Shown: positions 15,369 to 60,049, numbered from the whole stretch's first letter. The stretch: DNA of 63,816 nucleotides, filler included, from Ministeria vibrans ATCC 50519 (GCA_943704425.1; 5 parts of 5 records of this genome joined end to end with filler, not necessarily neighbours in it), one strand, 5' to 3'. The notes: generated from the sequence alone by a model not told the origin. Numbers and translations: made by a program.

Positions 15369-17124
15369 TTACGAAAATCGCCGACAAAAGGAATCAACGT
15401 CGAACTTTCGGCGACAGCCATTGAAATTCATAAAGCGGATTTTGCCGAAGATGGGCCGTTCCTTCCACCCCATATCGTGTGTGCCACAGATAGCCCACAG
15501 AATCCCCACATAACCATTGGGATCACGTCCGTCGAGTGAATACCGATCGTTGAGCAAAGTTGCAATCTCAAGTGCACTCTGAGGCGTCGCAGTCCACTCT
15601 AGAATCTAAATTATCATAAATCATTAGCTCCCTCCTACCACTCGATACTATTTACACACACATACATACACACCACATGCAAAAGAGCCACAAGTGGGGA
15701 TAAGATAGAACTATCAGAAATTACTATTGATACCTTCTTGGCCCAGTACATACGCAAGAAACCGTGCATGTGTCCTGTTGTGACCAACTGACGCTGTGCT
15801 GCGTTCCATAGAGGATCGTGCGTTTTTGCCTGTGTGAACTGTGCCTCTGTGTACACATATTCACGCGCGTCCGCTGTGTGGCGTGTGAGTGTCTCGCGTG
15901 CCCATTCGGCTGTGGTGTCCGCTGAGAGCACTGTCAGCGGACCGCTCGCCACTGCGCCGTTTGTGAAGAAGCAGTAGTTGTCGGCGAGCTCACGGCGCAC
16001 AAAGGCTTCCTCGACAAAGCCTTTGACCCCTTCGCGACAGCGTGCACTGGCAGCCCCCCGCTGCTCCACTGCCAGCACGGCCCGCTGTGCGCTCAACTGC
16101 CCAAAGTGGAAGTAGGCACTGAGTCGGGATGTTGCATCCGCAAGCGGGTCGTTACGGTGTGTCCCGTAGAGCCCAAGACGCTCCTGCGTGCAAAATTCCT
16201 CAAGCGCTGCATGTGCAGCACGAACCCCGGCAACAGGCTTTGCCAGTGGTGCGACAGAGCAGTCGACAGTGCGCGAGACGCGTTCCAGCTCGGCAGTCCA
16301 GTCGACTGCCGCCGCACTGGCGCCCGTGTCACACCGACAAGCGGCCGGCATCTCAAGCGGTGTCGTCGGGAAGGCAACGAGAAACTCCTCCTTCAATGCA
16401 TTTAGCTTGGGGCGCAACGTGCGTGCCCCGACTTCACGTTTCACCGACGCATGCCAGACGGGCACAATGTTGTGAGCGTCGACCTGTCAGTCAAACAGCA
16501 CAGAGTCAGAAGAAGCAACAGAGCGATCCCCCCCTCCCCCTGCCCTTGTGTGACTCTCACCTGAACTGTGGGAACTTCGATTGCGGCAGCCACAGACGCA
16601 ACCGTCTGCCGCGCCGAGGGCATCGGGGACATGTCCGTGACAAGCAGACCCGCCTTGACCGTCTTGACAAACGATGGAACCGTTTCCGCCGCATCGCCGC
16701 GCAAAAGTCGAAATCCTATGCCTACAGAGAGATAAGGTAGTGTGGTTGATCAATATATGACAAGGCGTCCCCGATGCCTGTCGTCTGTGCGACGGGAGAT
16801 CGCGACAAGTTCACTTTGCTCACCCAAACTTGCAAGTGACGATGACACCTCCGCCAGCCCTTTAAACATGAAATCGTACGCCCGCAAGGTGGCGTTGGGG
16901 AACTCTGGGATCAGGTTGAACACAACGTGCAGCGGCACTTCCCACAAGACGGCCTGTGAGCGTGCGAAGAGCAATGCCCAGTTGTCTTCGACGCGCTGGT
17001 CACGACTCATCCACAACACAACAGCCTGAGGACGCGGTGGGGGTTTCGTCACCGCACCAATCGTTCTCATGCGAGCTGGATTAAACCATTCTGGTCGCTG
17101 TACACTCAGACGTGCTCGCTTCAT
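15369..17124 (-). CDS. PHR: Class II CPD photolyase
   Basis: [115 protein letters not shown]. Confidence 0.96.
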
Positions 17125-17338
17125 CTGGCGTCGAAAATCTGTGAAGTGTCTGTGAATAATTCGATCAGTAGTGTTCAAATTTCACAACTCAAAAGTCAAT
17201 AAAATATATTTCTTGTCTTGTCCCCGACAGGAGCCACAACCTCACTTTGGCGCCGCTGCGTGATTCCAGTGTTCCCTTGACGATCCATAGGCCCCCCCGG
17301 TCGAGCGCGCCCGCCCCTGCGTCCGTCCCACCAGCGCC

Positions 17339-19191
17339 ATGGCCGACTCGCAGTCGTCGGCGATCGTCGCTGGCGAGCGCGTCTGGCTCCCCAACGCAAA
17401 GACAAGCTTCTCGCTGGCCACCGTCCGCGCCGTCGACCCTGCCAACGACACCTTCCAGGTACACCCCCCCCCCGAGCTCCGCTTCTCTCTTCCCTCTTCA
17501 TTTTCTCCCAAATCACTTTTTCTCTTTTTTTTTTTTTTCGAGTCTTGTCTTTTTTCAAAAAAGTCTCATTTCCCTCCAAATTCGCAAACCGCATGCGCTT
17601 TTCTTCGCACTCGACTCGCTCCGGCGCTGCTATCCCCCAGACACTTGCAAACCCCGCGCTAGCCTCTCGAATAGCCCTGTGGCGACCGAGAAACGAAATC
17701 TGTCCAGTCCAATCTCACATTCCAGTCACTTCCGAAACACACGCGCTTTCCCTCGCCCTCCCATGCCACCGCTGCCTATCGTAGGCCTCATTGCTATCGC
17801 ACCACCGCTCAGCAATTTCTCGCAGCAAAACAATACCAAAAGAGAGAAAAAAAAAAAAAAGACGGCAGAGCATAACCCCTTTTGGAACACATCATTTGGC
17901 TTATTTACGCCCACAGCTCACCAATGGAACGGTCGTGGCGCGCGGCAACGCCTACCCAGTCAACCCCACGTCGATGGATGCCGTCCCCGACAACACCATG
18001 CTGATGTATCTGCATGAGCCGTCACTGCTCCACAACCTGCGCGTCCGGTATGTAAACACACCGTCATTATTATGATTATATTTATATATATATATATAAA
18101 AAAGGATGGAGGGAGACGGACTGACAGATGAAGAAACACAAGATGAAGACGACATCGTCAGTGTTTTTATTAGAAAAGAAAAGAAACAAAGAAACAAAGA
18201 GAGATAATTATTATATACGTGAGAGAGTGGAAAAGCACCAGATAAAGTAGACATCTTCAGCTGAACTTGTTTTCATTCCGCTAGCTACGAGCGCGATGAA
18301 ATATATACCACAACTGGCTACATTTTGATTGCAATCAATCCGTACAAGCGTCTGCCCATCTACGACAACGATGTCATTTTCCAGTACTCGGGCGCCCCGT
18401 ACAACTCACTCAAGCCGCACGTGTACAGTACCGCTGATCGTGCCTATCGCTGTATGAAAGCCGCATCACAGGTTTGAACACACAAGACACAAAGAAGCCG
18501 GAAATGTTGGAGAATTGACCTGTGTGTGTGTATGTGTGTAGAAAGCGACACATGGCGACGTAGACCCATCTCGGCCCGTCAACCAGTCGATTGTCGTGAG
18601 TGGCGAGAGTGGCGCCGGCAAAACTGAGACATGCAAGTACATGATGCGCTTTTACGCCGTCGTGGGCAGCAGTGGCTCCATGGCCGGCATTGAGCAGCGC
18701 GTCATCGACTCAGTGCCGCTCCTGGAGGCCTTTGGCAATGCCAAGACTGTCCGTAACAACAACTCATCGCGCTTTGGAAAGTTTACCGAAGTCCATTTTG
18801 ACAGGTTTGATAAGAAACATGGATACTTTTGACTTGTAATACTAACACACACACACACACCAACACACCCGTCTCAAAACCAGCAAACAACGAATGGCGG
18901 GCGCTGCCATTGAGACGTATCTTCTCGAACGACCGCGCATTGTCCAACAAGCCCAAAACGAACGCAACTTTCACATTTTTTACCAATTGTTGGCGGGTGC
19001 AGAGTCGTCACTGCTATCGGTACAACCACACGCACTAACTACACATACACACACTAATTACACGCACACACTAACTACACGCGCGCACATCCACCCACCC
19101 ACCCACACACACACACACACACAACACTCACACAACACAACACACACACAACACAACACTCACACAACACAACACAACACACACACAACAC

Positions 19192-19254
<63 letters not shown>

Positions 19255-22200
19255 ACACTATAAGCATTAAGCACACAACCTCAATGGACGTACACTCACG
19301 TTTATTATTTTAACAGAAACTCGATCTGACGCGCGACGCACTGCACTACACATACCTCAACAGCTCAAAATGCGTTGCAGTCGATGGCATTGACGACCGC
19401 ACAGACTTTACTGATGTCTCGACTGCTCTCAACACCATTGGAATGTCTCGCGCTGAGCACGAAGACCTCTTTGGCATCGTAGCATCGCTCTTGCATTTGG
19501 GAAATGTTCTCTTTGATAAGCCTCGCCGGTAGGTCCTTTGACAAAGACACTGCAATTACGAAATTAATAATAATTTCAATTCTAGTGATGAAGGAGCAGC
19601 TGCAATTGCATCGTCGAGCTTGTCATCTCTGGCTGCAGCCGCACTCCGTCTCGGTATCAATCGCGATGAACTTGCTGACAAGCTGGTTCGCCGCACAATG
19701 AAGATGAGGGGCGGTCGAGGTGGCGACTCAGTCAAGTAATAACACAGTCACATTTTTATGCGTCTTTCATTCTTTTGTTTTTAAACGTCACTCATTTTTT
19801 CCAACAAAAGGATTCCTCTGTCGCGCTCTGACGCACAGATTGCACGCGACGCTCTGGCCCAGTTTGTCTACGGCACTACATTCAACTTCCTTGTGTCGCG
19901 TATCAACCAGGCCCTTCCCTGCCGCGACTCGGCCAGCTTTATTGGCATCCTTGACATTTCCGGCTTTGAAATCTTTGAACACAACTCGTTTGAGCAGCTC
20001 TGTATCAACTATGCCAACGAGAAGATCCAGGAGTGTTTCAACATGCAGATGCTGCTCCAGGAGCAGGAAATTTACGAACTTGAGGGTCTGCGCTGGAGAA
20101 AAGTTGATTTTCAGGACAACCGAGTATTTATCTCTTATAATACTTTTTTTTCACGCAACAATACTCATGATTATGTTCTTGTGTCTTTGTAGGGCATCAT
20201 TGATCTGGTGGAGGAACGTCATCGCGGCATTTTAGCCATTCTCGATGAAGAGTGCCGTGTGCCCAAGGCAACCGATCTTACCTTTGGTGCAAAGGTTCAC
20301 GCCACGCACGTCGGGTGCTCCTTCCTCACCAAACCAAAGGTAGGTGATGTGTCCTGCACTCTCACTCACATACACTGACTCAACACACGATTATTCACCC
20401 ACTCACACCCTTGACTCACTCGTCACATTGAATTTGGTAGGTTGGGAAGTCGCAGCGTCGTCTGTCGCCCGAGGAGGGCTTCATCATCAACCACTTTGCA
20501 GGCACTGTGCTCTACGAGACCAAGGGATTCCTTGAGAAGAACAACGCCGTATGCATTTGCTTTACAGAATCACACACTTACTGTTGTTGATCATTCTTTT
20601 TTGTAGACTCTTCACGACGACCTGTTGGGCACGTTGCGCAAGACGGAGAACGAGTCGATGCAACGCATTCTTCAACACCATCAAGAAATCACCAAAATCT
20701 CAACGAGTGGCAACGAGAAACGCTTCAAGTCTATTGGCGGTCGCTTTAACGATCAACTTTCGCTGCTCATGACCCGTCTGGCAAGCACCCAGTCACACTT
20801 TGTTCGCTGCATCAAACCCAATCAGCTTCAACGTCCCGGTGTCTTTGTCGAGCCTGACATTCTCGTGCAACTCCGCTACTCTGGCATGTGCGCAGTGCTT
20901 GTTCTCATGCAAAAGGGTTTTCCCACTCGCTGTACCTTTGAAGACATATATCAACGGTACACTTGAGCGCAGACGAATGCATCTCTCAACTGGTTCTTTT
21001 TCTCTATTTTCTCAGGTACCATCACAACTTTCCCGCCAAGTTTTTCGACCGCCTGTCTCGCGGCACCTTTTGCGAGGCAATTCTTGTTGCCCTCGACTTG
21101 CACGGTGGCAAAGACTTTCAGATTGGCCTCACCAAGGTAAGCTGCAATGCTACATAATTATGTATCTTGCTCACACCATGTGTTCGTGCTTTAGGTCTTT
21201 TTCAAGGCGGGCAAGATGAAGCTGCTTGATGACCTGGCGAATGCATCGAAGGAAAGCATTGATGTGGTTGTGAAAAAGGTGAAGAAGTGGCTGGCACAAA
21301 AGCGTTTCCGTGCCGCTGGTGTCGCCGTCATTGCGACCAACAAGCTTGCGCGTCGCATGCGCGGCATTCGCGCTGCCTATCGCTTTCGTCAGATGGTACG
21401 TGTGGTGCGTGTTGGCTGGGTGCTTTTTGCGGTGCGTCTGCTCAAGCGCGCTCGTCGCAAGATTGAGGAGCGCCGCCAAAAGGAGATGCTGTTGGCGCAG
21501 GACCAGCGAGAGAAGCTTGAGCGCGAGCGACTCGCGCGTCTCACCGAGGAGCAGCGTGCGCGCGAGGAGGAGGAGAAGCGTCTGCGTGCCCACGAAGAGG
21601 AGATTCAACGCCAGATTGCCGAGGCCGAGGAGCTTGCGCGTGTGCGCGAAGAGGCCAAGGTTGCTGCGGTGCGCAAGCAACTCGAGATGGAATTTGCGCG
21701 CAAGCAAGATGAGGCACGCGCTCTCGAGGAATCGCGTCGTGCCCAACTCGAGCAGAAGATACGCGACGAGGAGGCAAAGCGCGTCGAGGAGCTCCGTGCC
21801 GAAATGGAGCAGCTTACGCGGGGTGTCTCCGAGGAAGAGGTTGCGCAAATCGAGCAGGCGACACGCGATGCGGTCGAGCAGGAGTGTGCGGCACGCGAGG
21901 AGCGCAAGTTGCGCGAGCAGACGGAACAATTTGAGACGGAGTTTGCCAAGCGTGAGGCGGCGGTGCGTCGCGAGGAACGTCGTGCCCTGGACGACATGGA
22001 GAACACGTGGCAGCAAAAGATGGCGACGGAACGTCAGCGTCTGGCAGACTTGGAGAAGCAGCACTTGCTTGAGTTGCAGACCAAAATGACCAGTGACTGG
22101 ACCACACGTGAAAGTAATTTGCGTGGCGAGGAACGCAAGCGTCTTGATGAGACTCGCGCGCGTCTCGAGGAGCGACTCAACGAGGAGCGTGAACGTCTGC

Positions 22201-25200
22201 TGGCGCACTCGTCCAAGAAGGAGCAAGAGCTGGTAGCACAACTTGAGGCGCTGCGTGCCTCATCGACAAACAGCGACCAGAAGACACGCAAGCTAGCGAA
22301 GCAACTCAAGGCGGCAGAGCGCGCCGCCGAGGAGGCCAAGTTCAAGTTTGAAGATCAAGAGGTGGCACTGAAGCGCGAGGCACAACGTGTCGAGGCACTC
22401 CAGGCCGAGGTGCGCGATGCGAATGCCGCGGTGGAGGAGCGTCAAGAGAAGCTGATGCGCGAACTGGGACGCGAGCGTGAGGCACGCAGTCGCATCGACG
22501 AGACGCTTCGGGAGCTGCGTGAACGCGTGGAGAAGGAGGCCAAGGAGAAGTCCGAACTGGGCTCGTCCGTGGTCGACTTGCAGGCCCGCCTGCGCGATGA
22601 GATTGAGGCTCGCAAGCGATGGGAACACAAAGCTCAGACTCTCCAGGCGCAAGTGGACTCGATCACGGCCGACGCCGAGACTACGGCGAGCCAGGTGCGC
22701 GAACTCGAGAGTCGTTTGCGCCGCGAACGCGACGAGACCCAACTTATCAAGGAGGAGCTTGTCGAGACCAAGGGCCAACTCGAAATGGCACGTTCCGAGA
22801 CGTCTAATGCCAGCGACCAGACACGTGCCTTCCAACGTCAGCTCGACGACGCACGCAAGACACTCGAGTCCGAGCTGGCGACTGCAGCCGCGGACAAACG
22901 CCAGGCACTGGAGCTTGCCGAGAGCCGTCTGCAAACGGAACGGGCGGCACGCGAGCAGTTTGAGGCAGAGCAGAGCACCGCTCAGCAGCAGGCTCGTCAG
23001 TTGCAGCGCCAGGCGGTTGCCAAGGCCGAGGATGCCGAGTTGGCTCTGGAGAATGCCGTACGCGACGCCAACGAGAAGGAAAAGGCTGCCGAGCGACGCA
23101 TTGCAGGTCTCACAGCGGAACTTGATGACCTCAAGGCACAGCGTGAGACACAAAAGGCCGAACTTGAAGAGGCGCGTCAGTGCGAGGCCAAGTGGCTGCG
23201 AGAATACACTAGCACCAATGCACAGCTGGAGACTCTCCGTGGCGAGATGGAAGGCACCCAAGTGGCCAGTTCGGCCATTTCGGAGCAGCTTCGTGAGCAG
23301 CTCGTGAGCACAACGGCCAAGATGACGGACGCTGTGTCGCGCGCCGCCGATCTTGAAGTGCAGTTGCGCATTGCGCAAGACTCTGGCGAACGTAAGTTGG
23401 CACAGGCGTCGGAGCGAGCCGAAGATCTTGAGACTCAACTGGCGGCGGCGCGCAAGGACCTTAACGGTGCTATGGGCCGTGTGACAACGCTGCGCGAGTC
23501 AGTGGCGAGTCTGGAGGACGAGCTGGCACAAGAGTCGTCGTTGGTGGAGCGCAGTCAGCGTATGGTTGACGAACTTACAGCGAGTGGCGCCGAGGAGAAG
23601 CGTCTGTTGGAGCAGGCACACAAGGACATTGAGAACCTCGAGGCGGCGCTGGCGGCAACCAAGGCCGAGGCCGCAGAGCTCCAGTCGGGCCTCGTGGGAA
23701 ACCACGAACAAGTGTTACAGTCGGTGCGCAGTGAGCGTGACGCGGTACTTGCCGAACATCGTGATCTCAAGGAACAGCTGGCGCGTGCTACCGCCGAGTT
23801 TGTTGACCTCACTTCACGCTTTGAAGCGTCCGCTACGCGTGCCACCAGCGATGCCGAGGAGGCCGCGGCAAACATTGCCGACTTGGAACGACAACGACGC
23901 GAGCTTGAAATGTTGGTGGCGAAGGAGAAGCAGTGCCACGTGGAGGACGCGGCGGCGGCCGAAGAGCACGAGCGGGCGCTCAAGGAGAAACTCGCTGAGC
24001 TTGAGCAAGGGTTGGCGGACGCGCAGGCTGAGCAGCAGAGTACAACCGCACGCGAGGAGACTCTCACGCAGCGCTTGAGTGCCGTCGAGACGGCGGCCAA
24101 GACCACAGAGGAGTCACTGGAGGCGGTGCGCGCCGAGCTGCAGCAGGCGCGACGTGACCATGCACAGGAAATTGAGGCGCTTGAAGAGGCCAATGCCAGG
24201 CTGCAGCAAGAGAGCGAGCAGGCGAAAGAGTCGGCGGAGGCGTTGCAGGTGCAAATGGACAGTTCCAAGGAGCAGTTGATGGTGGATTTCGAAGAGGAGC
24301 GTGAACGTTGGCGTCAGCAGACGGAACGCCATGAGAATGAGTCGCGTGTGCTGCGAGCTGAGGCGGACGGTCGGTCTGCAGAAATGCTCGAACGCATGGC
24401 CGTTTTTGATGCAAACAACCGTCAGATGATGGACGAGACGAATGCGCAGCTGGAGGCCGCCGTGAAGCGGCTGCAAGAGGAGCGAGCATCGACACGATCA
24501 CTGCAGGACGAGTGCGATGGACTGCGTCAGAAGCTCGAGCGTCAGCGACAGTACTGCGAGACTGCCGAGGCGCAAGTGGCGTCGCTGCGTGAGACGATGA
24601 ACAACGAACGGACGGTGCGCGAAGCAGAGCGAAATAAATCTCGTCTTGCCGTGTCCGCATCGGTCGCGTCGGCCACGTCGGCTGTGGCTGCCTCGTCGTT
24701 GCACGCCGCCACGGCCGCGCGTGAGGTTCTCGAGGAGCGTCTGGCCATTCAGCGTGAGCACAATCGCGACCTGGACCGTCGTCAGGTGGAACTGGTGCGG
24801 CGCAACGAGGCCGCACAGAACACCATTCGGCTGTGCAAAAACGAAATTTCACGTTTGGAGACCAAACTCAAGGAGGAGAAGGCGGCCGCCGAGACTATTC
24901 GACTGGCACTTGACACGGAAGTGCGCGAGAAGGACGTTCTGCGGGCCAAGGTGGCCGAGCGATCACAGCAGCTGCGCACGCCGTCACCACGCAAGAAGCG
25001 TTTTGGTCGCAGTCGCACGCCCGGTGACAATGAAAATGGAAGCGGCAGCGACGATAATGGCCTACCGAAACTGGGCGAGTTGTACCGCTGTTCGCAGTGT
25101 CTCGCCATGGACAAAGATCCCATGGGACGCACGCCGATGCATTTTGCCGCAGCCGAGGGAAACGTCGAACTGCTCCATCGACAGCTCGCCCAAGGCGGCA

Positions 25201-28200
25201 TGGTAGTGGCGACGGCCCAGATGCGCGATGGCACGACCCCTCTCATTGAGGCGGCGGTGCGTGGCCATGACGCCTGTGTTAACGTACTGCTCAAGTTTGG
25301 TGTGGACGTCGACACGGCGACACACGATGGCTCGACTGCGCTGACTCGTGCCGCTGGGAGCAGCGAGGCCAAGACGAGCACGCTCAAGCTGCTTCTCGAT
25401 GCCACGGCGAATGTGGACACGCAAACCAAGGCGGGTGCAACACCGCTGCATCGCGCGTGCGAGGCAGGCAATCTTTCGTTTGTCACGTTACTGCTCGAAT
25501 GGAGTGCCGAACTCGAGCTGACTAATGACCAGGGTTGGACGCCCGCGTACACGTCGGTGTTTTACGGCAACCGTGAGTGTCTGGTGGAACTGCTCGATCA
25601 CAAGGCTTCGGTGAACCAGTCAGACTCGCAAGACACGCCCATGCTGCACCGTGCCGCGGCCAGTGGTAACTGCGAAATTGCCAAGCTGCTGCTGCAGCAC
25701 CACGCCGCAACTGCAGCGGTCGACGCGCAGGGTAACACGGCACTGCACGTTGCTGTGGAGCGTGGCCACACCGACATGGCACGTCTGCTACTTGAGGAAG
25801 GCGATGTGCCCGTGAACGCTATCAATGCTGACGGTGAGACTCCCTTACACAGCGCCTGCACGTCTGGCATCCCTGCGTTGCCGCTGCTTCTGCTGGGAAA
25901 TGGGGCTGATGTGGACGCACGCAGTGGTGAGGGACGCACGCCGTTGCACTATGCTGCCTCCGACGGCCACGACGAGATTGTGCGTCTTTTGGTGCGCGAC
26001 TTTGGCGCCGATGTCGAGTCTCACGCCAACAATGGTTGGACACCGCTGCACTGCGCCGCTGATGAAGGCAAGGATACGTGTGTCGAGGTGCTTCTTAAGG
26101 ACTGTTGTGCTATGGTGGGTGCACATGCCGAGAGCAGCGTGATGCCCGCCATGGCTGACGGCGCAACCGCCCTACACCTCGCCGCTGCCGGTGGTCATAT
26201 TGGGTGTGTGGCACGCCTGGTGGACGGTGGTGCAAGTGTGAATGCGCGCTCGCGACGCACGGGCGCCACACCATTACACGAGGCTGCGCGCACTGGCCAG
26301 TCGGACACGTGTGCTCTGCTGTTGGACCGCCACTCGAGCATCACCACGCTGGCCGACAACCACGAGACGTCGGCTCATTTTGCGGCTATGGGTGGGAGCA
26401 CACAGGTACTCGAGCTGTTTGACGCCGCCTACTGTCGCGCCACAGACAAAGTGGGTTCGAGTGGCTCATTGCACTGGTGGGATTCTCCGGACCGACTCAA
26501 GCACACGCCGCTGCTCTACGCTGCAGCCAATGGTCATGCGCGCGCTGTCATCTGGCTTCTCCGTCATGGTGCCAACGTGAATGCGCGCAACAACGTTGAC
26601 GACACGGTGGTTCACCTGGCAGCCGGGTCCAACTCGGTGGAGACCATGCAGGCGCTACTGAGTGCCGGCGCGTCCGCCGATCAACTCAATGTGCACCACC
26701 AGTCGCCACTTCACTTTGCCTGCGCCACCGAGAATGGCTCACCTGAGATTGTTGCGCTGCTACTCAATCAGAATGTGCCGCTTGCGCTTGCCGACGAGCA
26801 GGGCACAACGGCGTTGCATCTCGCCGCTGCAAGTGGACACACGAACAGCATCAAGGTGCTGCTTGCACCCAACGTGGAGCAGCCATTGCTGCGCGAAGAG
26901 ATGGTACTGGCACGCGACCGGGCAGGTCTGTCGCCGCTTGACCGTGCCATTGAAAGTGGTCATGAGGATGTCGTCCTTGAGCTGTTGCGAGCGCATTCGG
27001 ATCCGAACCAGCACGCGGATGACGGCTGCTTCCCACTGCACCGCGCCGCGGCACTGGGTCATGTGGAGATTGCACGCATGCTCTTGCGCACTCATGCCGA
27101 GGTGAATGCGCGAGCCTCTGCCGCCGGCGAGACTGCCCTGCACTGTGCCGCTGAGTGTGGCGAACTGGAGATGTTAGAGTTGTTGCTGAGCAATCAGGCG
27201 GATGTGAGCATTATGGACTTGCAAGGACACACTGCGCGCGATTTGGCGGCGCTCGAGAATCACACTGAGTGTGTGGCGCTGCTGGACCGTGCTGCTGACG
27301 AGGAACATTCGAATGGCGAACAGCAGCAGCAAGTGCGACGCCTGGGCAGCGTGGACGGCACCGCGACCCCCGAAATGACACGACGACTGTCGCAAAAGGA
27401 TGTCAACGCGAACAGGGAGGGGGGGCTCATTCGCAAGCTGTCGGGAAGTGGCAAAAGCGTCACGGAAGCTCCTGTGCCGTTGCGACCGACCTACGATGCG
27501 TCTGTGGCGCGTTTGGATGCGCAGCTCAAGTCGATCAAGGAAGGCAAGGGCGGTCCTGTGCAGGCTGTGGGACCCGCTGGGGGTGTGTGGGCAGATTTGG
27601 TGGATGTGCTGGGCTCACCGCCGGCCGAACAGGTCGTGTCGCACTTTAAGCGTGTTCGGTTCACCATTGAGGACGAAGGTGCTGCCGAGTCGTCGCCACT
27701 GTCGCTGCCCGCCCAAGGTACCCGACTTGTCATGACGACCGATTCGGACGACGATACGCCCGAGAGCCGTCACTTGCCGTCCAAGAGTGGCGGTCGCGCT
27801 GATGATGACGATGAGATGGTGTATTCGGACGATGAATACGACGACGATGAGGACGAAGACGAGGAGATTGTTGCTGCCCTTGACTTTGATCATGACAATG
27901 GGGCATCGTCGTCGCGTCGTCGTGCAGGTGGACGTCGCCGGGATCGCGCGAACAAGGCGAGTGTGGCAGAGGCGGCGGCATTGTCGCGCACGCTTGAGGC
28001 CGAGATGTTGTTGGATAGCACACAGGCGGCGTTGCGTCAGTGTCGCAATGAGGCGGTGCTGGAGCAACTGATTGAGGCGCGAGATAGTGCGCGTGTCAAG
28101 TTTATCAACGAAACCATAGAGTATGTGGAGTTGGCGGACTCGCCATCGACGCGCGCGCGCGCCGAGCAGGTGGAGCGACTTATGGACACCCTGCGCTCCG

Positions 28201-30257
28201 TGCTGCACAATCTCCCTGATGGTGGTGAGCTGCCCTTGTCGCCGCGTCACGGCCGTGGTGGAGTTGGTCGTAGCATTCTGGGTGGCGATGGGCGTGTGCG
28301 TGTGATGATGGGTTCGACGACTGCAGCTGCCTCGAACGATGTTGCCACACCGCACACGGGTGGTGGTCGTGGGGGGGGGGCACGCAGCGTGGAGACGGCG
28401 AGTGGCGCCGATCGGTTTGTGAGTCCGGCGACGTTGCGGGCGGGTCGATCTCGTCTGGCCATTGTGACAACTGCGTCGCCTATGGCGGGTGTGACGCCGG
28501 GTGTCCAGCCACGCCAAGCAGACAAGTTGCGGCAGTACATGGCTAAGGGTGCGCTGACACTGGACGAGCTGCACAGCAGTGGTGCAGCGCCGACGGAGAG
28601 CAGCGGGTACGGGTCGCCAACGCAGATGCTGGACGCACCTATGATGGACAAGGTGCTGATGCGCGATGTGTTGCGGGCCGCCATGGACGAGTACAATTCG
28701 TGGAAGGAGGAAGCAGACGTGGAGATTGCCGACAAGCGAGCGGCGCGTCAGAAGATCCAGAAGCAACTGAGCGAGGCGTTTCGTGTTGCGAGCATGCGTC
28801 TTGTCTCGGGTGGCACGGGCGCCTCGCCGGCACCGTCGCCTGCGTTTGGTGAAAGCATGAGTGGCAGTGGTGAGGTGATAGCGCAGAGCAGCAACCGACG
28901 GGCAGACATTGAAGAGCTGCAGCGACGACTGGCCGACTCGATTGACGTTGAACGACGTGCCGTGCGTACTGTGAGTGGATCGCATCGGTTTCCCGCGCGT
29001 CAATTGCTTCTTGCGGCCCATGAGGTGCTGGCTGCGTGCGAGCTGGAGAGTCAGCAGTTTGCCCAGCGTTGGGCCGAAGTGGACCGACTGCGCACACGAC
29101 TTGACGACATTATCCAGCATTGTGGTGAGCTGTCGGATCCATCGCCGACATTGGATGCGCTGCATGAGGCGCAGACTGCACTGGACGAGGTGAAAACTGT
29201 GCTATATCGCGAGCAGACGGAGTACAAGATTGCCAAAAGGGGGCGCAACGAGAAGCTCAAGGTGCACGCAGAGCGACAGTACCGCGCAGCCGCAGCCAAC
29301 GTGCTTGAGGCGGCGAAGCGCGAGGAGCGTGAGTGGGTGCGCTTGTGCACTCTGGCGCGCACGCACTATCCTGAACTGCTGGTGCGCAATGCGACACTGG
29401 CGCGTGTGGCCGAGCTGGGCATTGAAGGTCTGCTCAAGTCGGGCCGTGATCTGATGCAGTACGAGAATCGCCGCTTGCTGTACCGCAGCAGTGAGTCGTC
29501 GATGCACGCGGCCGAGTACGATGGCATGGACTGTCTGCTGCTGGAGTTCCCGCTCGACGGCACAGATAGCTCGTGGACGCGCGTGCAGGCGCGTGTGGGT
29601 GCAATGCGACCGCTTTTTGACCACCCGTGCATTCTTGGGGTGGAGGCTATCTTCCGTGACGCTGACCAAGGACTGGCATATGTGCAGCAGCCAGGTCTAG
29701 CTGACAAGCTTACTCTGGATGTGTGGCTTGAAGGTGAGCGAGCGCGCCAGCAGCAGCGACATGGCAGTGGCATGGCCATGCCGGTCAAAGGGGTGCTTGC
29801 GGGGATTCTGCAGGCGCTCGAGCACATGCACCGCTATGATTATGTACATGGCAACGTGTCGCCTGGCGTGATCTACGTGAGCAACGACAACGACGGCGAG
29901 GCTCAGCCGCTGGTGACGGGCCTGAGACTGGAGCACGATATGTCGGGAGCACCTCCGCTGCTCTCTGCGCAACACCGGGGCAGCCGAGGGGCCGCCATGG
30001 TTGCCGTGACACCGCCCGAGTGTCACTTGCAGGAGCGCAGCACGGCCACAAAGCACTCGGACATGTACCAGTTTGGAGCATTGCTGTTCCTAGCTGCCTT
30101 TGGCTCGACTTTACCCGCACCATCGCCCTCCGCCGAGCCTGTTGTGCCCTTCCACCCAGACACAGACCTTGTTGCGCTCATCACAGACTTGTTGGCGCGC
30201 AAGACGATTGCCCGGCCGTCTGCCGAAGAGGCTCTTGTCCATGGATTCTTCAAGTGA
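17339..30257 (+). CDS. Unconventional myosin: class-VI-like motor + SAH/coiled coil + 21 ankyrin repeats + C-terminal pseudokinase
   Basis: Motor over about 13 short exons: [96 protein letters not shown]. It is spliced in frame to a 9-kb terminal exon (21195-30257). Confidence 0.9.
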
Positions 30258-30521
30258 AGTATACCAGAGAGAGAGAGAGAGTGAGTGAGTGATATATAGT
30301 GAGAGCACGTGTGAATGAATAAGAGTGAAATGAAATCATCTATGTCAAAATAGTTTAAAAACAAACAAACAGCGGAATTGTTTTGGTGGTCGACTTGATT
30401 GATGAATAATAATAATAAATTAATATTAATTTTATTATTATTATTATCATAATAATATTAATTACGTTGTATACATCTCTGTAGAGGAGGGGGGGGNNNN
30501 NNNNNNGGGGGGGTGGAAAGA

Positions 30522-33500
30522 TCAGAGTTTCGGAAGAGAACCGCTTGAAACGTTGAGGTTGGAGGAAGGGGATTGGTACAGCAAAGGTTCGGCAAAGATG
30601 GAGGCAAGAAAGTTTGCGGCGACCGACTTGACCATGAAACGTTGGGTGATCTCTTCGAGTTTGCGACGGCGATTGACGTGTGCGCGCAAGTGAGCGTCGT
30701 CGTCGAGACGCCATCGACGAGCATAGCAGACGCACGTTTCGCGCACGAGAGGGGCAAGGCCACGACGAGTGACGACCATGCCGTCGGTGAGAGGCCCGAC
30801 AAAGCCCTTGGTAGGCACAGCCGATGGACGCACAGTGATGTGGTACATGCCCTATGAGAAAAGAGAAGACACAAAAAAAAAAAAAAAGAAGAGATAGAGA
30901 GACAGTCAGTGTGGGTGAAGAAGAAGGCCGTGTGAATGACGGATGAAATGTACCCATGGGAGTTGATAGATGAAAAGAACAGCACGGTCGCCTGCGAGTT
31001 GGGCGGGAAAGTAGTTTTTGTCAATGGGGTCTTCGAGCCAGACGACGACGAGGCCGGCACTGCAGGTAGCGGTGGTGTCGGAGAACTGCTCGGGCGTCAA
31101 AGGGATGAGGCCGGGCACGAGAAAGAGCAGCTCAAAGGCGCTCTCGCTGTAGTACGGGGCAGAGCCAGATGTGCACTGGGCGAGGGGCCCTTTGAAGCCG
31201 ACGTGGGAGGCGACGTCGATGGGCCAGCCGAGGGCGTGAAGGAAGGCCAGAAACTCGGGTGAGCGTTTAGCACCGTGGGTGGTCGCAATGTCTTCGGCCT
31301 TGTAGTGGTGGCGGGGCACGTAAAATACGGCGACAGTGTCGCATTCGCGTGCGCGGGTCAGGTCAAACGCCTCAAGAGCCGAGTGGAGCTGCTCGTTGGC
31401 AATGAGCTCGACGACGCGCGGGCGTTGTGACTGAACGGCAGAACCACCGCCGCCTTCGGTGGACACGCTCGGTTTGATGTTGTCGAGGGAGAACAGGCCC
31501 AGAGTGGCAGCGAAGACGCGTCCTGCTTGAAATTTGCTCTCGTGAAGGTACAGTTCGGCTGCGGGAGGTTCTTCAATGGTGAGTGAGGGGTCTGGGAAGG
31601 TGGAGGATGCGGACTGGAAGGCGGAAAGAGCGTCAGTCTCGGCCTGGCACTGCTGAGTAACAAGCTGGTTAAAGCAGTCCTGCTGGTCCTTGAGTGAGCC
31701 GGTGACGGTCAGTCTGGAGATCTCAGGGATGACAGAGGCGCCGTATGCGGGTGCATTGAGGTCGTACTCGTCGTCAGTGTCGACGGGACGCTCACCGGGG
31801 AGAGGAGCAAAGGAGGTGGCAGGAAGAGCCGGAGTTGGCTGGCCAATGGAAGGGTCGAGTGGGGGACGGGCAATGTGGTGGGGTGCGATGGTGTCACTTG
31901 TAGTCGGAGTCGTAGTGGCGGTGGTGGGGAGGTAGATCATGGAAGAATTCCAAGTGAAGCGGCCGGTGGTGTCACGGACAATGACGGAGACGCCGGGTGC
32001 ATGGGAGGAGGTGGGGCGTTCAATGAGGGTAAGGATGGTGGCACCGTCGACGGCAAAGAAACGCGTGTGGGATGGGTACTGGGGGTTTTGGTCGTCAAAG
32101 GCATTGGCGTGGTCATGACCAACGGCGCGAAGGGCACGCGCCTCGTCGACGAGCGAGCTGGTGCTGGCAGGCCCGCAGGTCGCCGGGAAGGACCCCAGGT
32201 GATTCAGCAGCTGTAGAAGAACCATTTCAGCAGCTTCTTTGACGCGCTTGCTGGCGGGTGTTCCCTTCTTGGTCTCTTTGGGCATGCCACTCTCGACGTT
32301 GAAAAAGCGGTCAAAGTCCTGACCGGGAAAGACCGGACGACGACGGCTCTTGTCACCGGTGATGCCCATTTCAATGGTTTCAATGACGGCACGCAGACAT
32401 TTTTGGTTCTTGGGCAACAAAATCCACTGGTCCGAGACAACCCAGCGAGCAACGCAGTAAAAGGCGCTGACAATAAGTGAGTGGTGTGTGCGTGTGTGGC
32501 GCTGTTTGGGCTGCGAGTGGAGTTCGTCAATGTAAGTGCACAATGCAAGGACCGTGTTTGGCGCATTCATATCGTCTTCCGAGTGAATGGCTGCGTGCAG
32601 ACTGCTCATGGAGCTGATGACGTCGAGTGCAGCGAGTGCAACCTCGGTGATCCACTGGAGCTTTACCAGACGCGTGCTGATGGCACGACACACGGTCGCG
32701 CCGGCAACGCCACGGTACGGAACCTCTTCAAAAGCCCAGGCGGCCATGCTGTAGAGCAGCATCTGCCAGTTGTGCGGGTCGGTGACGGTGTTGAGGGCGC
32801 CAAAAAGCACACCAGCCAGAGTGGGTTTGAGGTCTTCAAAGGTCTGGCTAGCAACGAGAGACGTCGTAGTCCGTGCGGCAGCTTTGGCCAGCGATGCAGC
32901 ACCCGACATGTCGTTCAGCGTTGATGAGCGCACACTCCCAGGTTCTGTGGTAGCCGAGCCTGAGTTTGAGCCGGAGCGAGTGGTAGCGGAGGCACTGTTG
33001 CTGCCACTCGCGTTGTTGCTTGTGGGCGAGCTAATGGTCTTGCGTGCCTTGGCGTGGCCATGCACACTGTGCTGAGCACTGCTTGTGGTGGAGGTGGCGG
33101 CGAGATTGGCGGCGAGAACGGCAGCGGCAGCAGCGGCAGCAGCTGTCTTGGAGACGCGTCCAAAGCTGACAGGGAGACCGTAGACAGGCGTGTTGCTGTA
33201 GGAAGTCATAGTGTCGGCGGTGGTGTCGATGTTTTTGTTTTCGTCGTCGCCGTTAGCGACGGCGGACGGTAAAAGTGACGACGCCGAAAGAGTGCGGCCA
33301 ATGGGGGACGTCATGGACTGCGATGGTTTGTTTGTGGTAAAGGACGCAGCGGCAAGTTGGGCGCCCGAGAGAGGCTGTGAGGTGCCCGAGGCAAGGTTAA
33401 CGGCGGCAGCGGCAGCGGCAGCAGCGACGGTCGCAGCGCCAGCTTCGTCGGGCTGCCAGGCGCACGAGCGGATTGGAGCGTGTGAGAAGTGGTTGGGCAC

Positions 33501-35410
33501 ATCGAGAAGGGTCATGAGAGTAGAGACAGCGGCACGACGCAGCTCGTGAACTGAATTCTCGTGAAAGATGGGGTGGACGGGCGCTGATTCATTGAGGACA
33601 CCTGAGAGAGCAGCTACGTAGTGCGGAGCGAGAATGCGCACACCGCACAAATTGAGGGTAAAGATGTGACGCGTGCTGAGCACGATGGCGGTCATAGAGA
33701 GCGTGTCCTGTTGAAGACCCTCACAGAGCGCGCGATAGAAGCGTGCAAGATAAATTGGCTCAAACTCATCGCGAATGGTCACTCCATCGTCCTCATAGTA
33801 CTGAGGGGCAGTGAAAATGCGACAAAGTGCACCATATGCCTCAGCACGACCACTTGCAAAAAGAGCATTCTTGGTGGTGCACGCTTGGAATAGCCAATGG
33901 CCCACAATGTGCAACAGTGAGTTACCTGGTGAGAAACACACAGTGCGTCAAAAATTGTAGGAGTCCTCAAAAGCGTTGTCAAAGCTCACACGCACACAAC
34001 GCACCACAAACACACTTACACACACTCGTCACACAGTCGTCAAACACTCGTCACACACTAATCACATTCGTCACACACTAATCACACACTAATCACACAC
34101 TAATCACACACTAATCACACATTCAGCACACACTAATCACACACTAATCACACACACACACTCGTCACACACTCGCAACACACTAATCACACACTAATCA
34201 CGCACTAATCACACACTAATCATACACTAATCACACGCTAATCACACACTAATCACACACATCACACACTTATAACAAACAGTTTCTCTTTCTCTCGGTG
34301 TGTATCGTACCCGAAACACGAGGAGGGCGGGTAGACTTGTCCGGGGTGGTACACTGAGAGCCGACGGCGAGAAAGGCATCGACACACTTGGACACGCCCG
34401 TCATGGCCTCGAGGAAGATGTCGGGGTCTTCGATGAGATTGGGGTTGGTGATGATGTGGAGCATGCGGAACCAGGCGTGGACGACGGCGTCGTTGGGTAG
34501 GTCCAGAGCGCGGTTGTAAAAGGACTTGCGACGGCCCGAGAAACTGATAAAGACAGCGGGAGTGCCCTCAGACTCACCGAAGAGCAGGCGAATGAGACGG
34601 TTTGTGAGTGCGTCGACGGAGGAGTTCCATGTCTTGATGAGGTTCATGCGGTGGCGCCAGCGCACGCATTTGGTTTTGAGTTCGGCCCAGAGGAAAGGGG
34701 CGGGGAAGCAGTACTTGCTGGAGTGCAAGAAGGTGTCAAAGAGGACGTGGACGAGTTTGGCGCAGAGGGCAATGGCGAGTTCGGAGCTGTTGTCGGCTGT
34801 GGGGGCACTGGAGCCCACTGAGACCGGAGTTGGTCCAAAGACGGCTGCACCGCCAGTCGTGACCGACTGCGGTGAGTTGAGTGGGGTGCTTGTAGAGGCC
34901 TCTGGGCGCAGAGTGGCTTCAGACGACGAGATGGCGTCCCACGACAAGTCTTCGGTCGCGACCGCGAACGAACCTTTGGTGTTCATGAACATCTCCGAGG
35001 GTCCGCTGATAGAAGCGCGTGGTACGGCAGTATGTGGGAGACTGGGTTCGCGTGCGAGAGCCGAGAACGTCTTGGAGACGCCAACGTGGCTCGGCGTTGG
35101 TGTTTCGGCGGGAGTCCCTGTGCCAATAGGGAGCGACACGAGCGAGTCGGTGACGCCGATGAGCACGCGAATGAGCACATCCCAGGTGTTCGCGTCGAGT
35201 TTGTCGCCACCGCTGTGAACCAGAGCCTGAATGACGTCGAGAGCGCGATTGCACAGTTGGACTTGCTTCTCAACGTTTCCACCTCGCGGAATGAACAGCA
35301 GACTGTAGTGTCTGATGATCGGCTCAACCCATGGAATGGGATCGTCCCGAATGCACTGTGGAATTCCATCGCTCGGAAACCATATGCACTGCAGCCATTC
35401 GGAGTAGAGC
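30522..35410 (-). CDS. RALGAPB: Ral GTPase-activating protein subunit beta (5' end lost at contig edge)
   Basis: NSLLHIVGHWLFQAC, GRAEAYGALCRIF, YLARFY, HHSLIVSAFYCV..W, CLRAVIETIEMGITG, PASKRVKEAAE, VIVRDTTGRFTW, FLHALGWPIDV..H.G, GPLTDGMVV.RR.L..LVRETC. Confidence 0.92.
34050..34270. repeat. Intronic minisatellite, ~11-bp unit CACACTAATCA
   Basis: Directly visible tandem array inside a RALGAPB intron. Confidence 0.85.
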
Positions 35411-35429
35411 TGAAACAAAGAAAAATTAA

Positions 35430-56252: not shown

Positions 56253-57191
56253 TAGAAACAAACGGTCAAGACACAGCTGATTGCACACGACAAAGAAGTG
56301 TACGACATTGCATTCTCACGCAATTCCAATGTGTTTTCATCAGTGGGTGCAGACGGGTCAATGCGTAAGACAGAAAGAAAGTGAGAGTGAGCGACCGTGG
56401 ATGAGTAACTGGTCTTCTATGGTGAATAGGAATGTTTGATCTGCGCACTTTGGAACATTCGACTATCATCTATGAGAGTCCGAATCTTGTGCCTCTTTTG
56501 CGAGTCTGTTGGAACAAACAAGTAAGCATTATGTTGACTCTTTATTAATATAGTTTGGTCTTTTCTTTTAGTAGTTTTGATTCATTCACTCACTTTTTTT
56601 ATCACAGTTTTTTTCGCTCTCGCTAACCCATTCACTCACTTTCCTTATGACTCTCTCTCTGTTTTAATTACCTCTCCTGGTGTTTTTTTTTCGCTTTCTT
56701 CTTTTTCTTCTTGTGATTTATAAATGTTAGTCGCTTGTTTTTTCACTCTTTTTCCTTTTGCAACTCTCACTCTCTCTTTACGACTCTGGTTTTACTATTT
56801 TTCCAGTTGACCCTGTTTGTTTGTTTCGCTCACTTACTCTCCTTCTCAGAATGAAAACTATCTTGCAACGTTTGCCATGGACTCGCATGAGCTGCTGCTG
56901 CTCGTCTTCGACACGCGCAACCCCACAATGCCGGCTGCGGCGCTGGGCAAGCACGAGGCGCCCGTCAACAGCATCTGTTGGGCACCTCACACGGCCGACC
57001 ACCTGTGCTCGGCAGGCGACGACGCTCATGCCTTTATCTGGGACGTCAAACAGCGACTCGACGAAGACCGCAAGTGCCCCATCCTCGCCTACCGCGCTCC
57101 CGCTCAGATCAACCAGCTCAGTTGGTCCCGTCTGCAGCCCGAGTGGATCTCCATTTGCTTTGAGAAGACCCTTCAGGCTCTCAAAGTCTAG
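55286..57191 (+). CDS. DCAF7: DCAF7/WDR68 WD40 scaffold
   Basis: [109 protein letters not shown]. Confidence 0.97.
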
Positions 57192-57438
57192 CTCTTACCA
57201 GTTTTATTTTATTTTCGTTGTTTGTGGTTTGTGTTTTTGTTGTTGTTTGACAATGAAAAAAATTGAATGTCTTTTTCTGTGGACGACTAATTTCACATCG
57301 TGAGTGGAGTTGTTTCGATGGGAAGGATAAAAGGAAAAACAACGGAGCCATCTTTTTTTTTTTATTATTCAAACTTTCAATAGTGAGTGAATAGTGAGTT
57401 TCATTGACACAAGCCAGCATTAATAATTTCTCTCGGAA

Positions 57439-58856
57439 TGTCCGCTTCGGCTCATGTGAGGGTGAAGCAGCCGCTTTGGATGGTTAGATTGATTGTCTTG
57501 TACAATGAAGCTTTTGCCCCAGGACTTCCAAAAACAACTTGTCTTGTTCTATATGAAGCTTTTGCCCTAGGAGTTCCAAAAAAAAACAATGCTATGCAAA
57601 CCACTCCTTATCTCTATCCCACATCGTTTTTTTTTGTCGTCCCAGTGTCTTCCATCTGTCCATTATCTTCTCTCTCGGGTCCGCTACTCATATACTTTGA
57701 GAGCTACCCGCGCTTCGCGTCCACTTCCGTTGAGCACCAACGTTTGACGGTCGACACAGCCTATTGCTCTTGTCTTGGGCCTCAACTTCAAAAATAGGGA
57801 CCGTTGCATCTGTTCACTTGGTATCAAAAACATCTACTGTGTTGTTAGCAGTATACCCTGCTTTGTTCGTCTTCACTTGTAACGCGCTATGAGAAACTTT
57901 ATTAACCAGTGCGAGCGTTCCATATTGTATTATATTTTGTCAAATTAAAACTTTCATGCGCCTTGCATTTATACTAGCCAACACAAGACACTCAGTCCTA
58001 CTATTTATTAAACCCGTCAGAAGAGCCTTTTCTGGCAAGGCTTCCGCCACCCACCAATGGGTTGAAATTAAGCCGGGTGCTTAAATTAAGCTGTATTAAT
58101 AATGCACTCAATTTCGCGTATCATTATACATACGTTTACACTACGCTCATTATATACTTCATACGCCGAATATCAAATACAAATCTATTATCACTATATT
58201 GATTAATACGCGAAATAAGAGCATAAAATGAAAGCTTTATTGCTATTTTTTTTGGAAGTCTTTTAAAAGCTTCATTGTACAAGACAATCTTAACCATCCG
58301 AAGCGGCTGCTCTACTCTCGCTTAAGCCGAAGCGGACAAGTACTTGCATGCAGAGCCGCAAGTGAAACGCTCAGCGGCTAAAGACGTATCCTGATTTTAA
58401 ACTAAATGGGTGCCTTAGGTGGGTCTTCTTGGGCGTGCAGGGTTGCTATTGACACGCAGTTTTGTAATCTGAGAGTCTTGTGTTGGCTTGCATCAACAAA
58501 AGGTTACCTGAAAGTTTAATTAAATATTTTTAAACTAAAATCTCGCACATAAAAAGGGAAGAAGAAAAAGAAAGAAGGAAAATGCAAAAGAGGAAAGGGA
58601 AAGAAAGGAAGGAAAGAAAGGAAAAAGACAAAAAAGGAAAATTATTCACCAGGAGCAGGCAGCAGTCTGATATCAGGCCGCCCTGATGGTGCCGCCGCCA
58701 CTCCCTGTAGTGCTCATACGCCCTCTCAAGGCACTGCTTTTCGATCGCTACAGCATCTTTGCGAGCTTTTTTTTTTTTGGAAGTCCTAGGACAAGGATGG
58801 TTAGATTGTCTTGGTACAATGAAGCTTTTGCCCATAGGACGTCCAAAAAAATGCTT
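57439..58856. repeat. Degenerate non-coding inverted-repeat complex (MITE/foldback-like)
   Basis: Unit A (~95 bp) at 57439-57534 is inverted at 58249-58338 with a partial direct copy at 58796-58856. Unit B (~53 bp) at 57943-57995 is inverted at 58469-58521. Confidence 0.75.
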
Positions 58857-59149
58857 GCCAGTCTCAGGTTGTGTCTCTTGAGGCAGTTGAAGATGGTGTC
58901 GCTGAGCGACGACTGCCCCCCTCGCGTTGCCCCAGAGGTTGCCAAAGTAATCGCCCACCCACTGGGCCACTGGACAAGGTGCTACCGTCGCTGTACCAGG
59001 CGCCCGAAAGCCGCGTGGTCGTTCAGGCGTGCCGTGGCGTGTCTGAGAAATGCTCACGTCAGCGTCTGTGAGGGCTTTTTCAGGCCCAGGCTCGCTCGCC
59101 TCTCGCAGGCTAATGATGACCTGTGTGCACATGTCACGAACGCAGACCT

Positions 59150-59870: not shown

Positions 59871-60049
59871 TGTCCAGACACCGTGAATAGTGTGGAAGGG
59901 TTAGTGGATTCTGATTTCCGAAATTTCCTCTCTGTCCTTTTTTTTTTTGAATTTTTTGAATTATTTTATTTTATTTTTATTTTAAAATTTAAACACTCTC
60001 TTCCGCTCTCTTCGTCCGTTTCTCGCCGACGGGCAACGGAAGGGCAACA

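Follow-up and report, generated by a model that had tools for sequence, protein, structure and literature searches.

The DNA examined here is a window of 63,816 nucleotides (filler included) from Ministeria vibrans ATCC 50519 (GCA_943704425.1), within which the region 13005-35777 was analysed. The sequence is eukaryotic: its exons have a GC content of 54-62%, and its introns are short, poor in GC and rich in repeats. On the plus strand, positions 17339-30257 hold a giant myosin gene in which the motor is followed by a neck, a rod of coiled coil, 21 ankyrin repeats and, at the C-terminus, a predicted pseudokinase. A single gene of this composition had been proposed in a first-pass annotation made from the sequence alone, and the present analysis supports it. 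The product is probably a dimeric, myosin-VI-like actin motor or anchor that would carry a non-catalytic docking platform made of the ankyrin repeats and the pseudokinase, the whole encoded by one 13-exon gene. The neighbouring genes are a photolyase gene upstream and a RalGAP-beta-like gene downstream, both on the opposite strand.

The genome to which the window belongs was assembled to 29.7 Mb in 2,860 contigs and has about 35 myosin loci. Among its genes are three for integrin-beta and one for a canonical myosin VI, and there are two myosin II loci. The genome is consistent with a single-celled holozoan from the sea, which may plausibly be a filasterean. A search of the genome for light-harvesting proteins found none, a weak blank that gives only a hint of heterotrophy. 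For Ministeria, 39 myosins and a striated-type myosin II have been reported (PMC3942036).

Gene model and motor exons

The myosin gene comprises 13 exons and 12 introns, and its coding sequence of 11,301 nt specifies an unconventional myosin heavy chain of 3,766 aa and about 417 kDa, close to the length of ~3,800 aa first estimated. When the exons were joined locally for a frame check, the coding sequence contained a single, terminal stop. All 12 introns have GT-AG borders, with lengths of 57-458 nt and a GC content of 0.28-0.49, compared with 0.54-0.61 for the exons of this gene. Intron 5 contains a CA/CACA-rich microsatellite (~19040-19270), and similar CA and CT/GA repeats occur in other introns and spacers of the genome. 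Exon borders were first guided by a full-length, intron-free myosin from the same genome, after which frame-preserving GT/AG pairs were listed. Homology searches were run exon by exon, and the joined exons were used for frame, length and mass only.

The window protein belongs to the myosin superfamily. Nine stop-free pieces between 18265 and 20963 match the Pfam Myosin_head profile with E-values from 4e-6 to 3e-41, and their profile positions are collinear (22-633 of 679), an arrangement far beyond chance. The ATPase motif set of the motor is complete: the P-loop GESGAGKT (18602-18625) and switch I NNNSSRFGK (18755-18781) both lie in exon 4 (18542-18804; Myosin_head E=3e-34), and switch II DISGFE (19953-19970) lies in exon 8 (19811-20123; E=3e-41). 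The remaining motor exons are exon 3 (18285-18471; E=5e-19, profile 22-83), exon 5 (18884-19019; E=3e-15, profile 163-219), exon 6 (19317-19528), exon 9 (20193-20339; E=3e-10), exon 10 (20441-20548) and exon 11 (20607-20956; E=3e-24), the last of which carries the SH1 region with LMQKGFPTR at 20904-20930. Exon 7 (19586-19735) covers a variable motor loop region; it has frame-consistent GT-AG sites and, taken alone, no Pfam match.

Upstream of these, exon 1 (17339-17458, donor GT at 17459) supplies the start codon and the first half of an N-terminal SH3-like domain. Its ATG is the first to follow the in-frame stop at 17288-17290. Exon 2 (17917-18047) encodes the remainder of this domain up to the start of the motor, with a myosin-typical junction (...LHNLRVR/YERDEIYT) and 62-68% identity in tblastn to C141 and C2184, two paralogous loci of the same genome.

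At the other end of the motor, exon 12 (21016-21136) encodes the converter. It is collinear with the consensus FCEALLVALDL..DFQ.GLTK of VI and VI-like myosins, and a search of the PDB with this exon alone returned no match. The first-pass annotation had joined the motor to the tail by an in-frame splice, GLTK/VFFKAGK, and this junction proved to be a canonical phase-0 GT-AG intron of 58 nt (intron 12, 21137-21194), which opens with GTAAGC at 21137 and closes with TTTAG ending at 21194. Exon 13 (21195-30257, stop codon at 30255-30257) then runs for 9,063 nt and includes the end of the motor, the neck, the rod, the ankyrin array, the linker and the pseudokinase. The 3013-aa open reading frame (ORF) described earlier is present at 21216-30257, in a frame that is already open from 21195. 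Searched singly against Pfam, exons 1 and 12, the neck, the rod and the linker gave no match.

Motor class and closest relatives

Comparison with solved structures was likewise made exon by exon. Myosin VI outscores the next class in exon 8 (112 bits, against 103 for myosin V) and in exon 10, where it is the best solved match (30.8 bits, against 25.5 for myosin VIIa), and stands at 62.2 bits in exon 11, where the best other class reaches 61.8. Exon 4 scores 88 bits with myosin VI and 91.6 with myosin XI, and exon 6 scores 32.8 bits with myosin VI against a best other score of 44.5, with classes XI, I and II all above VI. Exon 6 lies at the position of the class VI insert-1 and carries no insertion. 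In a PDB search its residues 10-68 align contiguously to myosin VI constructs from which insert-1 had been deleted, whereas the alignment to wild-type myosin VI starts only at residue 21-25. Because the exon is contiguous only with the insert-1-deleted constructs, the class VI insert-1 is absent. The SH1 region reads LMQ.GFP.R in VI and VI-like proteins, as against ...R(I/V)RRAG(F/Y)... in five further myosins compared from this genome.

A tree was built with IQ-TREE (LG+C20) from 45 rows and 219 columns covering the SH1 region, converter and neck; the row of the window gene combines its exons piece by piece, the split codon being written as X. A branch with 100/100 support sets the VI and VI-like rows apart from the five other myosins of the genome. 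The canonical VI clade (12 rows, 100/99) includes the genome's own copy and leaves the window gene outside. The window gene falls instead in a VI-like set of 16 rows (99/93), in which the Capsaspora 'MYO6 protein, variant' lies closest to it. The paralogs C141 and C1679 form a pair (99/98) that stands beside this 16-row set and not with the window gene. The motor is accordingly placed by its sequence in a myosin-VI-related ('VI-like') clade outside canonical class VI. Pfam found neither the cargo-binding domain PF16521 in the 3013-aa ORF nor MYO6_lever in the window protein at E<=10. The description 'myosin-VI-like' given at first pass is thus apt in the broad sense of the VI-like clade but fails for canonical class VI, which excludes the gene in the tree and whose insert-1, MYO6_lever match and cargo-binding domain are all missing from it.

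The alternative that survives best holds that the protein is a true minus-end-directed class VI myosin with a swapped cargo tail, which would have kept the reverse gear and would pull its ankyrin-pseudokinase cargo inward. This is possible, if rather unlikely. It draws first on the post-converter segment and neck (21195-21420), the equivalent of the myosin VI insert-2, which carries a V..W motif (21267-21308) and, further on, a helix at 21378-21419 that resembles a degenerate IQ motif (Pfam IQ found no match in the window protein). This segment aligns without gaps to canonical VI (insert-2) and VI-like sequences, the V and W positions being invariant in 43 of 43 rows, and the neck is followed by an ER/K stretch (rich in Glu, Arg and Lys), as in myosin VI. 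It draws further on an AlphaFold2 model of the corresponding segment of C141 (predicted local distance difference test, pLDDT, 79), in which the converter is followed by a short helix, a break and a long helix. Foldseek placed 26 myosin VI structures first for this model (ranks 1-27, E<=3e-13), the best of them constructs that contain insert-2; no other class did better than 8e-10, and the next class followed about five orders of magnitude behind myosin VI. The same ranking also speaks for the placement of the motor in the VI-like clade.

Against true class VI membership stands, besides the missing insert-1 and the exclusion from the canonical clade, the neck itself. It aligns to solved myosin VI with a low score (12.9 bits, E=1.1), which is chance level and comparable with the 10.6 bits obtained for the myosin Va lever, and MYO6_lever matches the genome's canonical VI at 2e-11 but not the window protein. 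The template-modelling (TM) scores of the C141 model are, moreover, too low for the direction of the lever to be read from it. Canonical class VI proteins of animals (MYO6/Jaguar) share with the window protein the motor superclade, the LMQ.GFP.R signature, the collinear post-converter segment and the ER/K stretch after the neck. The window protein differs from them in its ~900-aa coiled coil, its 21 ankyrin repeats and its pseudokinase, and is about three times longer.

Public relatives of the C141 exon that encodes the motor end and neck form two groups. The first consists of 'MYO6-like' protist proteins: the Capsaspora 'MYO6 protein, variant' at 53%, members from Fonticula, choanoflagellates and amoebozoans, and RUN-tailed forms from several other supergroups. 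The second consists of animal myosin VI at 36-42%. VI-like protist myosins share a clade with the window gene. The Capsaspora owczarzaki protein (head + PH) is 51% identical to it over 215 columns, RUN-tailed members come from Rigifila, Diphylleia, centrohelids, Picozoa and haptophytes, and the Fonticula alba member is a myosin heavy chain. Tails vary widely within this clade (PH, RUN, TPR, BIR, CAP-Gly, PDZ), but none of the 120 VI-like relatives listed (903-2872 aa) has ankyrin or kinase domains, and the window protein is far longer than any of them. Such protist proteins have been counted as class VI in one survey (PMC3942036) and not in another study (PMC5583752), and the debate turns on whether non-animal VI-like myosins are class VI, with reverse gear. 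With canonical VI and VI-like motors side by side in one genome, the two can here be compared directly.

Within the genome, the loci nearest to the window motor are C2184, C141 and C1679. Identity over exon 8 is 69% for C2184, 67% for C141 and 65% for C1679 (second half only); for the other myosins of the genome it is at most 53%, or the match covers only part of the exon. C141 and C1679 are 69-71% identical to the window gene in the converter and 44-47% in the neck. The C141 paralog (L012:2568-7490 (+) = C141 ~56370-61290) has a VI-like motor end, an ER/K stretch, a coiled coil of ~900 aa and ~10 ankyrin repeats, and no kinase-like domain was found in it. The last residues of its ORF resemble intron read-through, and a further exon may follow.

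The C1679 paralog (L017:3401-9283 (-) = C1679 ~27900-33780) encodes, all in a single exon, a motor C-terminus, IQ-like helices, an ER/K stretch, ~12 TPR-like repeats and a caspase-like CHAT domain (Pfam E=4e-13). We know of no protease-type CHAT domain described on a myosin before this one. C2184 (L013, a contig of 2,751 nt) covers a VI-type motor over its N-terminal two thirds. The tail of the canonical VI lies at C1653:31288-33022 (L011:7289-9023 (+)); besides its MYO6_lever match it has the cargo-binding domain (E=2e-29), of which this is the sole copy in the genome. C1653 shows only the converter-end, lever and cargo-binding exons; upstream of them lie a run of 29 T and a gene on the minus strand, but no motor exons. 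The canonical VI gene is probably split by assembly breaks, C2184 being a candidate for part of its motor.

Pseudokinase, ankyrin array and rod

The protein ends in a helical lead-in of ~55 aa and a pseudokinase domain (together 29250-30254), whose first beta-strand begins at ~29463. A kinase-fold C-terminus had been claimed at first pass, and the homology and predicted fold behind it are solid despite a weak Pfam score, the last 335 residues matching Pkinase at E=0.0027 (17.6 bits, below the cut-off). An exhaustive phmmer search returned 162 relatives of the kinase fold (best E=6e-16, 30% identity), and those matched regions that were checked are Pfam Pkinase domains with E-values of 1e-22 to 1e-40. 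An AlphaFold2 model of the domain, made from an alignment with 31 relatives, reached a pLDDT of 87 and a predicted TM-score (pTM) of 0.84. The Foldseek matches listed from the PDB were all kinases or pseudokinases, including STRAD, the JAK1 and TYK2 pseudokinase domains, MLKL and STK40.

Alignment to the relatives revealed replacements at the catalytic positions: K2776L (beta3 Lys), E2793R (alphaC Glu), D2880N (catalytic Asp), N2885V (catalytic loop) and D2902G (DFG). Among the 31 aligned relatives, the canonical residue is present at these positions in 24 (K), 25 (E), 30 (D), 30 (N) and 30 (D) sequences, respectively. Structural features that persist are the HxD His, the APE motif, Ser-Asp in alphaF, one conserved Gly and the Arg of alphaH-alphaI. 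Because the five catalytic residues are lost and the structural ones kept, the C-terminal domain is predicted to be a catalytically dead pseudokinase, with a pattern typical of fold-preserving pseudokinases; the earlier designation as a pseudokinase agrees with the replacement of 5/5 catalytic residues.

WNK, CASK and some other 'pseudokinases' use non-canonical residues, and the domain could in principle be an atypical active enzyme or a nucleotide-binding switch of the same kind, although this is improbable. Known atypical active kinases usually retain most of the canonical catalytic residues, whereas here all five have been replaced together (by Leu, Arg, Asn, Val and Gly). What speaks for activity is the compact, confidently predicted fold with its conserved structural residues, and the look of the relatives, all but one of the aligned ones retaining their catalytic residues, together with the description of the TKUL domain as regulatory (PMC13196369).

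TKUL from Leishmania is the closest solved relative of the kinase family profile, through its kinase domain (E=1e-65), and also the top Foldseek match. In Leishmania mexicana the TKUL kinase domain is described as the regulatory module of a HECT ligase (PMC13196369). A Pfam scan of 11 kinase-domain relatives found HECT or PARP in 7, downstream of the kinase where positions were reported, and upstream ankyrin repeats in 4, one of them from the filasterean Pigoraptor; an ankyrin array ahead of this kinase also occurs in metagenome-derived proteins. In P0005, P0009, P0018, P0038 and P0080 the kinase is followed by HECT or PARP, some of these proteins having ankyrin repeats and one EF-hands. TKUL-type proteins look like a widespread protist design of a 'kinase-regulated effector', and the order 'ankyrin array then TKUL-like kinase' is a recurrent protist module. 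The window protein departs from the TKUL-like family in two respects: it stops with the final helix of the kinase fold, whereas relatives carry an effector (HECT or PARP) further downstream, and its catalysis would be lost. The Pigoraptor protein P0058 was considered as an ortholog and rejected; the visible BLASTP output showed generic ankyrin similarity of 26-31% and nothing in the linker.

The ankyrin array occupies 25113-27320 (ORF residues ~1300-2035) and matches Pfam Ank_2 at E=9e-127 and Ank at E=5e-101. Counting by motif spacing and by eye gave 21 repeats, the number first reported, with cores 33-46 residues apart. Between the array and the kinase region lies a linker of ~650 aa (27321-29249). 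Some stretches of it are helical and others Pro/Gly/Ser-rich, and an acidic patch lies at 27801-27866. The linker is predicted to be mostly disordered and lineage-specific; in searches it matched neither a Pfam family nor a paralog in the genome, nor did it resemble the kinase-domain relatives. The first-pass term 'helical linker' suits just the ~55 residues that directly precede the kinase fold, which are modelled as helices, the linker being mostly Pro/Gly-rich.

Language-model features of the tail matched the TEX14, ANKK1, RIPK4, TNNI3K and RNase L clusters at 0.95-0.97. Ankyrin repeats precede a catalytically dead kinase fold in ILK, TEX14 and RNase L, which work as docking or allosteric platforms, whereas ANKK1, RIPK4 and TNNI3K combine ankyrin repeats with an active kinase. 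The window tail shares with ILK, TEX14 and RNase L the order of ankyrin repeats and kinase fold. This is a resemblance of design that does not imply kinship: none of the three is joined to a motor, and the relatives of the window kinase fold form a separate protist family.

N-terminal to the ankyrin array, exon-13 residues ~70-1260 contain almost no Pro or Gly. The first-pass annotation had divided this part into a segment resembling a single alpha-helix (SAH) and ~1,100 aa of coiled coil; both elements are present, but in the proportion of ~280 aa SAH-like to ~900 aa coiled coil. The ER/K-rich stretch (21405-22240) has no heptad periodicity, with a heptad z of about -1 to +1 over exon-13 residues ~70-350, and 15-18 i/i+4 salt pairs per 70 residues within the ~175 residues from ~70 to 245. 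Because it combines the lack of a heptad signal with many such salt pairs, the stretch is described as SAH-like, though its E+R+K content is just 0.36-0.54. The coiled-coil rod (22245-24975, exon-13 residues ~350-1260) reaches a heptad z of 9.5, and its a/d positions are 60-80% hydrophobic, compared with 12-30% at the other positions. A two-copy complex prediction for a 141-aa piece of the rod (23292-23714) scored 0.27 against a mark of 0.32 and counts neither for nor against a dimer.

It is very unlikely that the gene model merges two units, a rod myosin and a separate ankyrin-pseudokinase gene, or runs across an assembly join within exon 13. Such an error is conceivable, given that the gene model is predicted from the DNA sequence, that stand-alone proteins with ankyrin repeats and a kinase occur in related protists, and that the 2,860-contig assembly has apparently split the canonical myosin VI over several contigs. 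However, the frame of exon 13 is uninterrupted, and its 3,020 codons extend over the supposed boundary without a stop. GC is coding-like throughout at 0.58-0.62, falling to 0.49 past the stop, with none of the low-GC, repeat-rich sequence typical of introns and spacers here. C141 also runs from rod to ankyrin repeats in one exon. Misassembly inside the 9-kb exon had been named at first pass among the possible objections, and a search of exon 13 for long DNA repeats able to drive it found none. Because C141 and C1679 also hold a motor C-terminus and a long tail in one exon, the fusion of motor and long tail appears genuine.

A filament-forming, myosin-II-like structural myosin, which the ~900 aa of heptads and the presence of conventional myosin II in the same genome might suggest, can be dismissed as highly improbable: Pfam Myosin_tail_1 has no match in the rod even at E<=10, the myosin-II-type charge repeat is missing (z=0.4 at 28 residues, z=-0.5 at 28/3), and large globular and disordered domains follow the rod.

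Proposed role, novelty and surroundings of the gene

As a dimeric VI-like motor or anchor with a docking platform, the protein may be pictured as follows. The heptad rod would make it a two-headed dimer, and the ER/K stretch and rod would set the tail ~150-180 nm from the heads. By analogy with ILK, TEX14 and RNase L, the ankyrin solenoid and pseudokinase would serve as a non-catalytic docking or allosteric platform. Since such a platform binds partners without catalysis, the protein would move a bound partner or signalling complex, or tether it to actin. The most likely origin of the tail is a fusion of a VI-like motor and rod with an 'ankyrin array + TKUL-like kinase' module, whose kinase afterwards lost its catalytic residues. 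The proposal of a 'motorised signalling scaffold', made at first pass, may reasonably be retained.

Sampled 31-letter words from 17300-23299 were looked up in sequencing runs, where a share of 0.66 is expected for spliced mRNA. The stretch occurs in marine polyA RNA-seq and seawater metatranscriptome runs. Four sequencing runs contain a share of 0.71-0.72, near the spliced-mRNA expectation, a marine-sample polyA RNA-seq run (on record as RNA) contains 0.33, and two runs of unrecorded type, presumably DNA, contain 0.98-0.99. These word shares suggest that the myosin gene is transcribed and spliced, but are not proof.

Several points weigh against the picture of a dimeric VI-like motor with a docking platform. 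The share of 0.72 could equally come from the DNA of a strain ~1% divergent. The splice junctions, and the continuity of the transcript into the ankyrin and kinase part, are predicted from the DNA sequence. The tree has ~219 columns and five outgroups from the same genome, and its references were chosen as the best matches of a paralog. No ortholog with the window tail was found in other species, in searches that were incomplete and from which close kin may be hidden. Dimerisation, SAH behaviour, binding of light chains and partners, and direction of travel are all read from sequence features.

A myosin with a C-terminal ankyrin array and a pseudokinase was not found in two myosin-wide surveys (PMC3942036, PMC2375034), and an already described class with this architecture, which the first-pass annotation had raised as a further objection, was in neither. 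Searches against long proteins returned nothing at E<=0.001 for tail residues 2050-3013 and no ortholog for neck residues 1-100; both are weak blanks, as close kin are possibly not in the searched set. An exact look-up showed the 3013-aa ORF not to be on record.

Other myosin classes do combine the motor with a kinase or with ankyrin repeats: class III has an active N-terminal kinase, class XVI has N-terminal ankyrin repeats, and classes XXXI and XXXIV have ankyrin repeats in the tail (PMC3942036, PMC2375034). The likeness to class III ends at the joining of motor and kinase, as the window protein begins with a short SH3-like domain and its kinase fold is C-terminal and predicted to be dead. 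The ankyrin repeats of class XVI precede the motor at the N-terminus, whereas those of the window protein are C-terminal to the rod. Classes XXXI and XXXIV, which are stramenopile, have few ankyrin repeats, accompanied by PH or FYVE. None of these four classes, compared here by their described domain layout, joins a long ankyrin array to a C-terminal pseudokinase. The first-pass judgement that the architecture was unknown holds to the extent that this tail combination was found on no myosin searched, but the protein is less isolated than that implies: C141 shares most of the layout, minus the kinase, and the ankyrin + kinase module is recurrent. What is new is the tail combination, on a known motor type, in a family whose tails often swap domains.

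Myosin tails determine the cargo and location of the motor. The animal myosin repertoire formed in large part among the single-celled relatives of animals (PMC3942036). The window gene and its two paralogs show a VI-related motor re-used with several signalling-type tails, which illustrates domain shuffling in compact form. In practical terms the finding is of modest importance; function here is predicted from sequence, and new tail combinations are frequent in myosins.

A bolder view takes the VI-like myosins of this genome as lineage-specific 'motorised signalling modules' (ankyrin + pseudokinase, ankyrin, TPR + CHAT), with a force-gated scaffold in the window gene; its chances are slim. The ER/K helix, the rod and the 21-repeat solenoid would then act as a compliant spring, and tension generated by actin would control binding by the pseudokinase. 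The scaffold, in a unicellular organism closely related to animals, might sit in actin-based filopodia, and might be minus-end-directed like myosin VI.

Upstream of the myosin gene and divergent from it lies a photolyase gene (15635-17178, minus strand; DNA_photolyase E=5e-11 on its first exon). The two start codons are ~160 bp apart. Because the divergent photolyase starts so close upstream, no further 5' coding exon of the myosin is expected, and given this spacing the two genes probably share a promoter region. Convergent with the 3' end of the myosin is a RalGAP-beta-like gene (30906-35418, minus strand; RALGAPB_N E=5e-29, Rap_GAP E=8e-7), and the spacer between the two stop codons is ~650 bp of 49% GC. 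A second, unrelated myosin lies ~85 kb downstream on the same contig (C408:118000-127000, with Myosin_head exons at C408:121081-123663), and is only 31-55% identical to the window motor exons.

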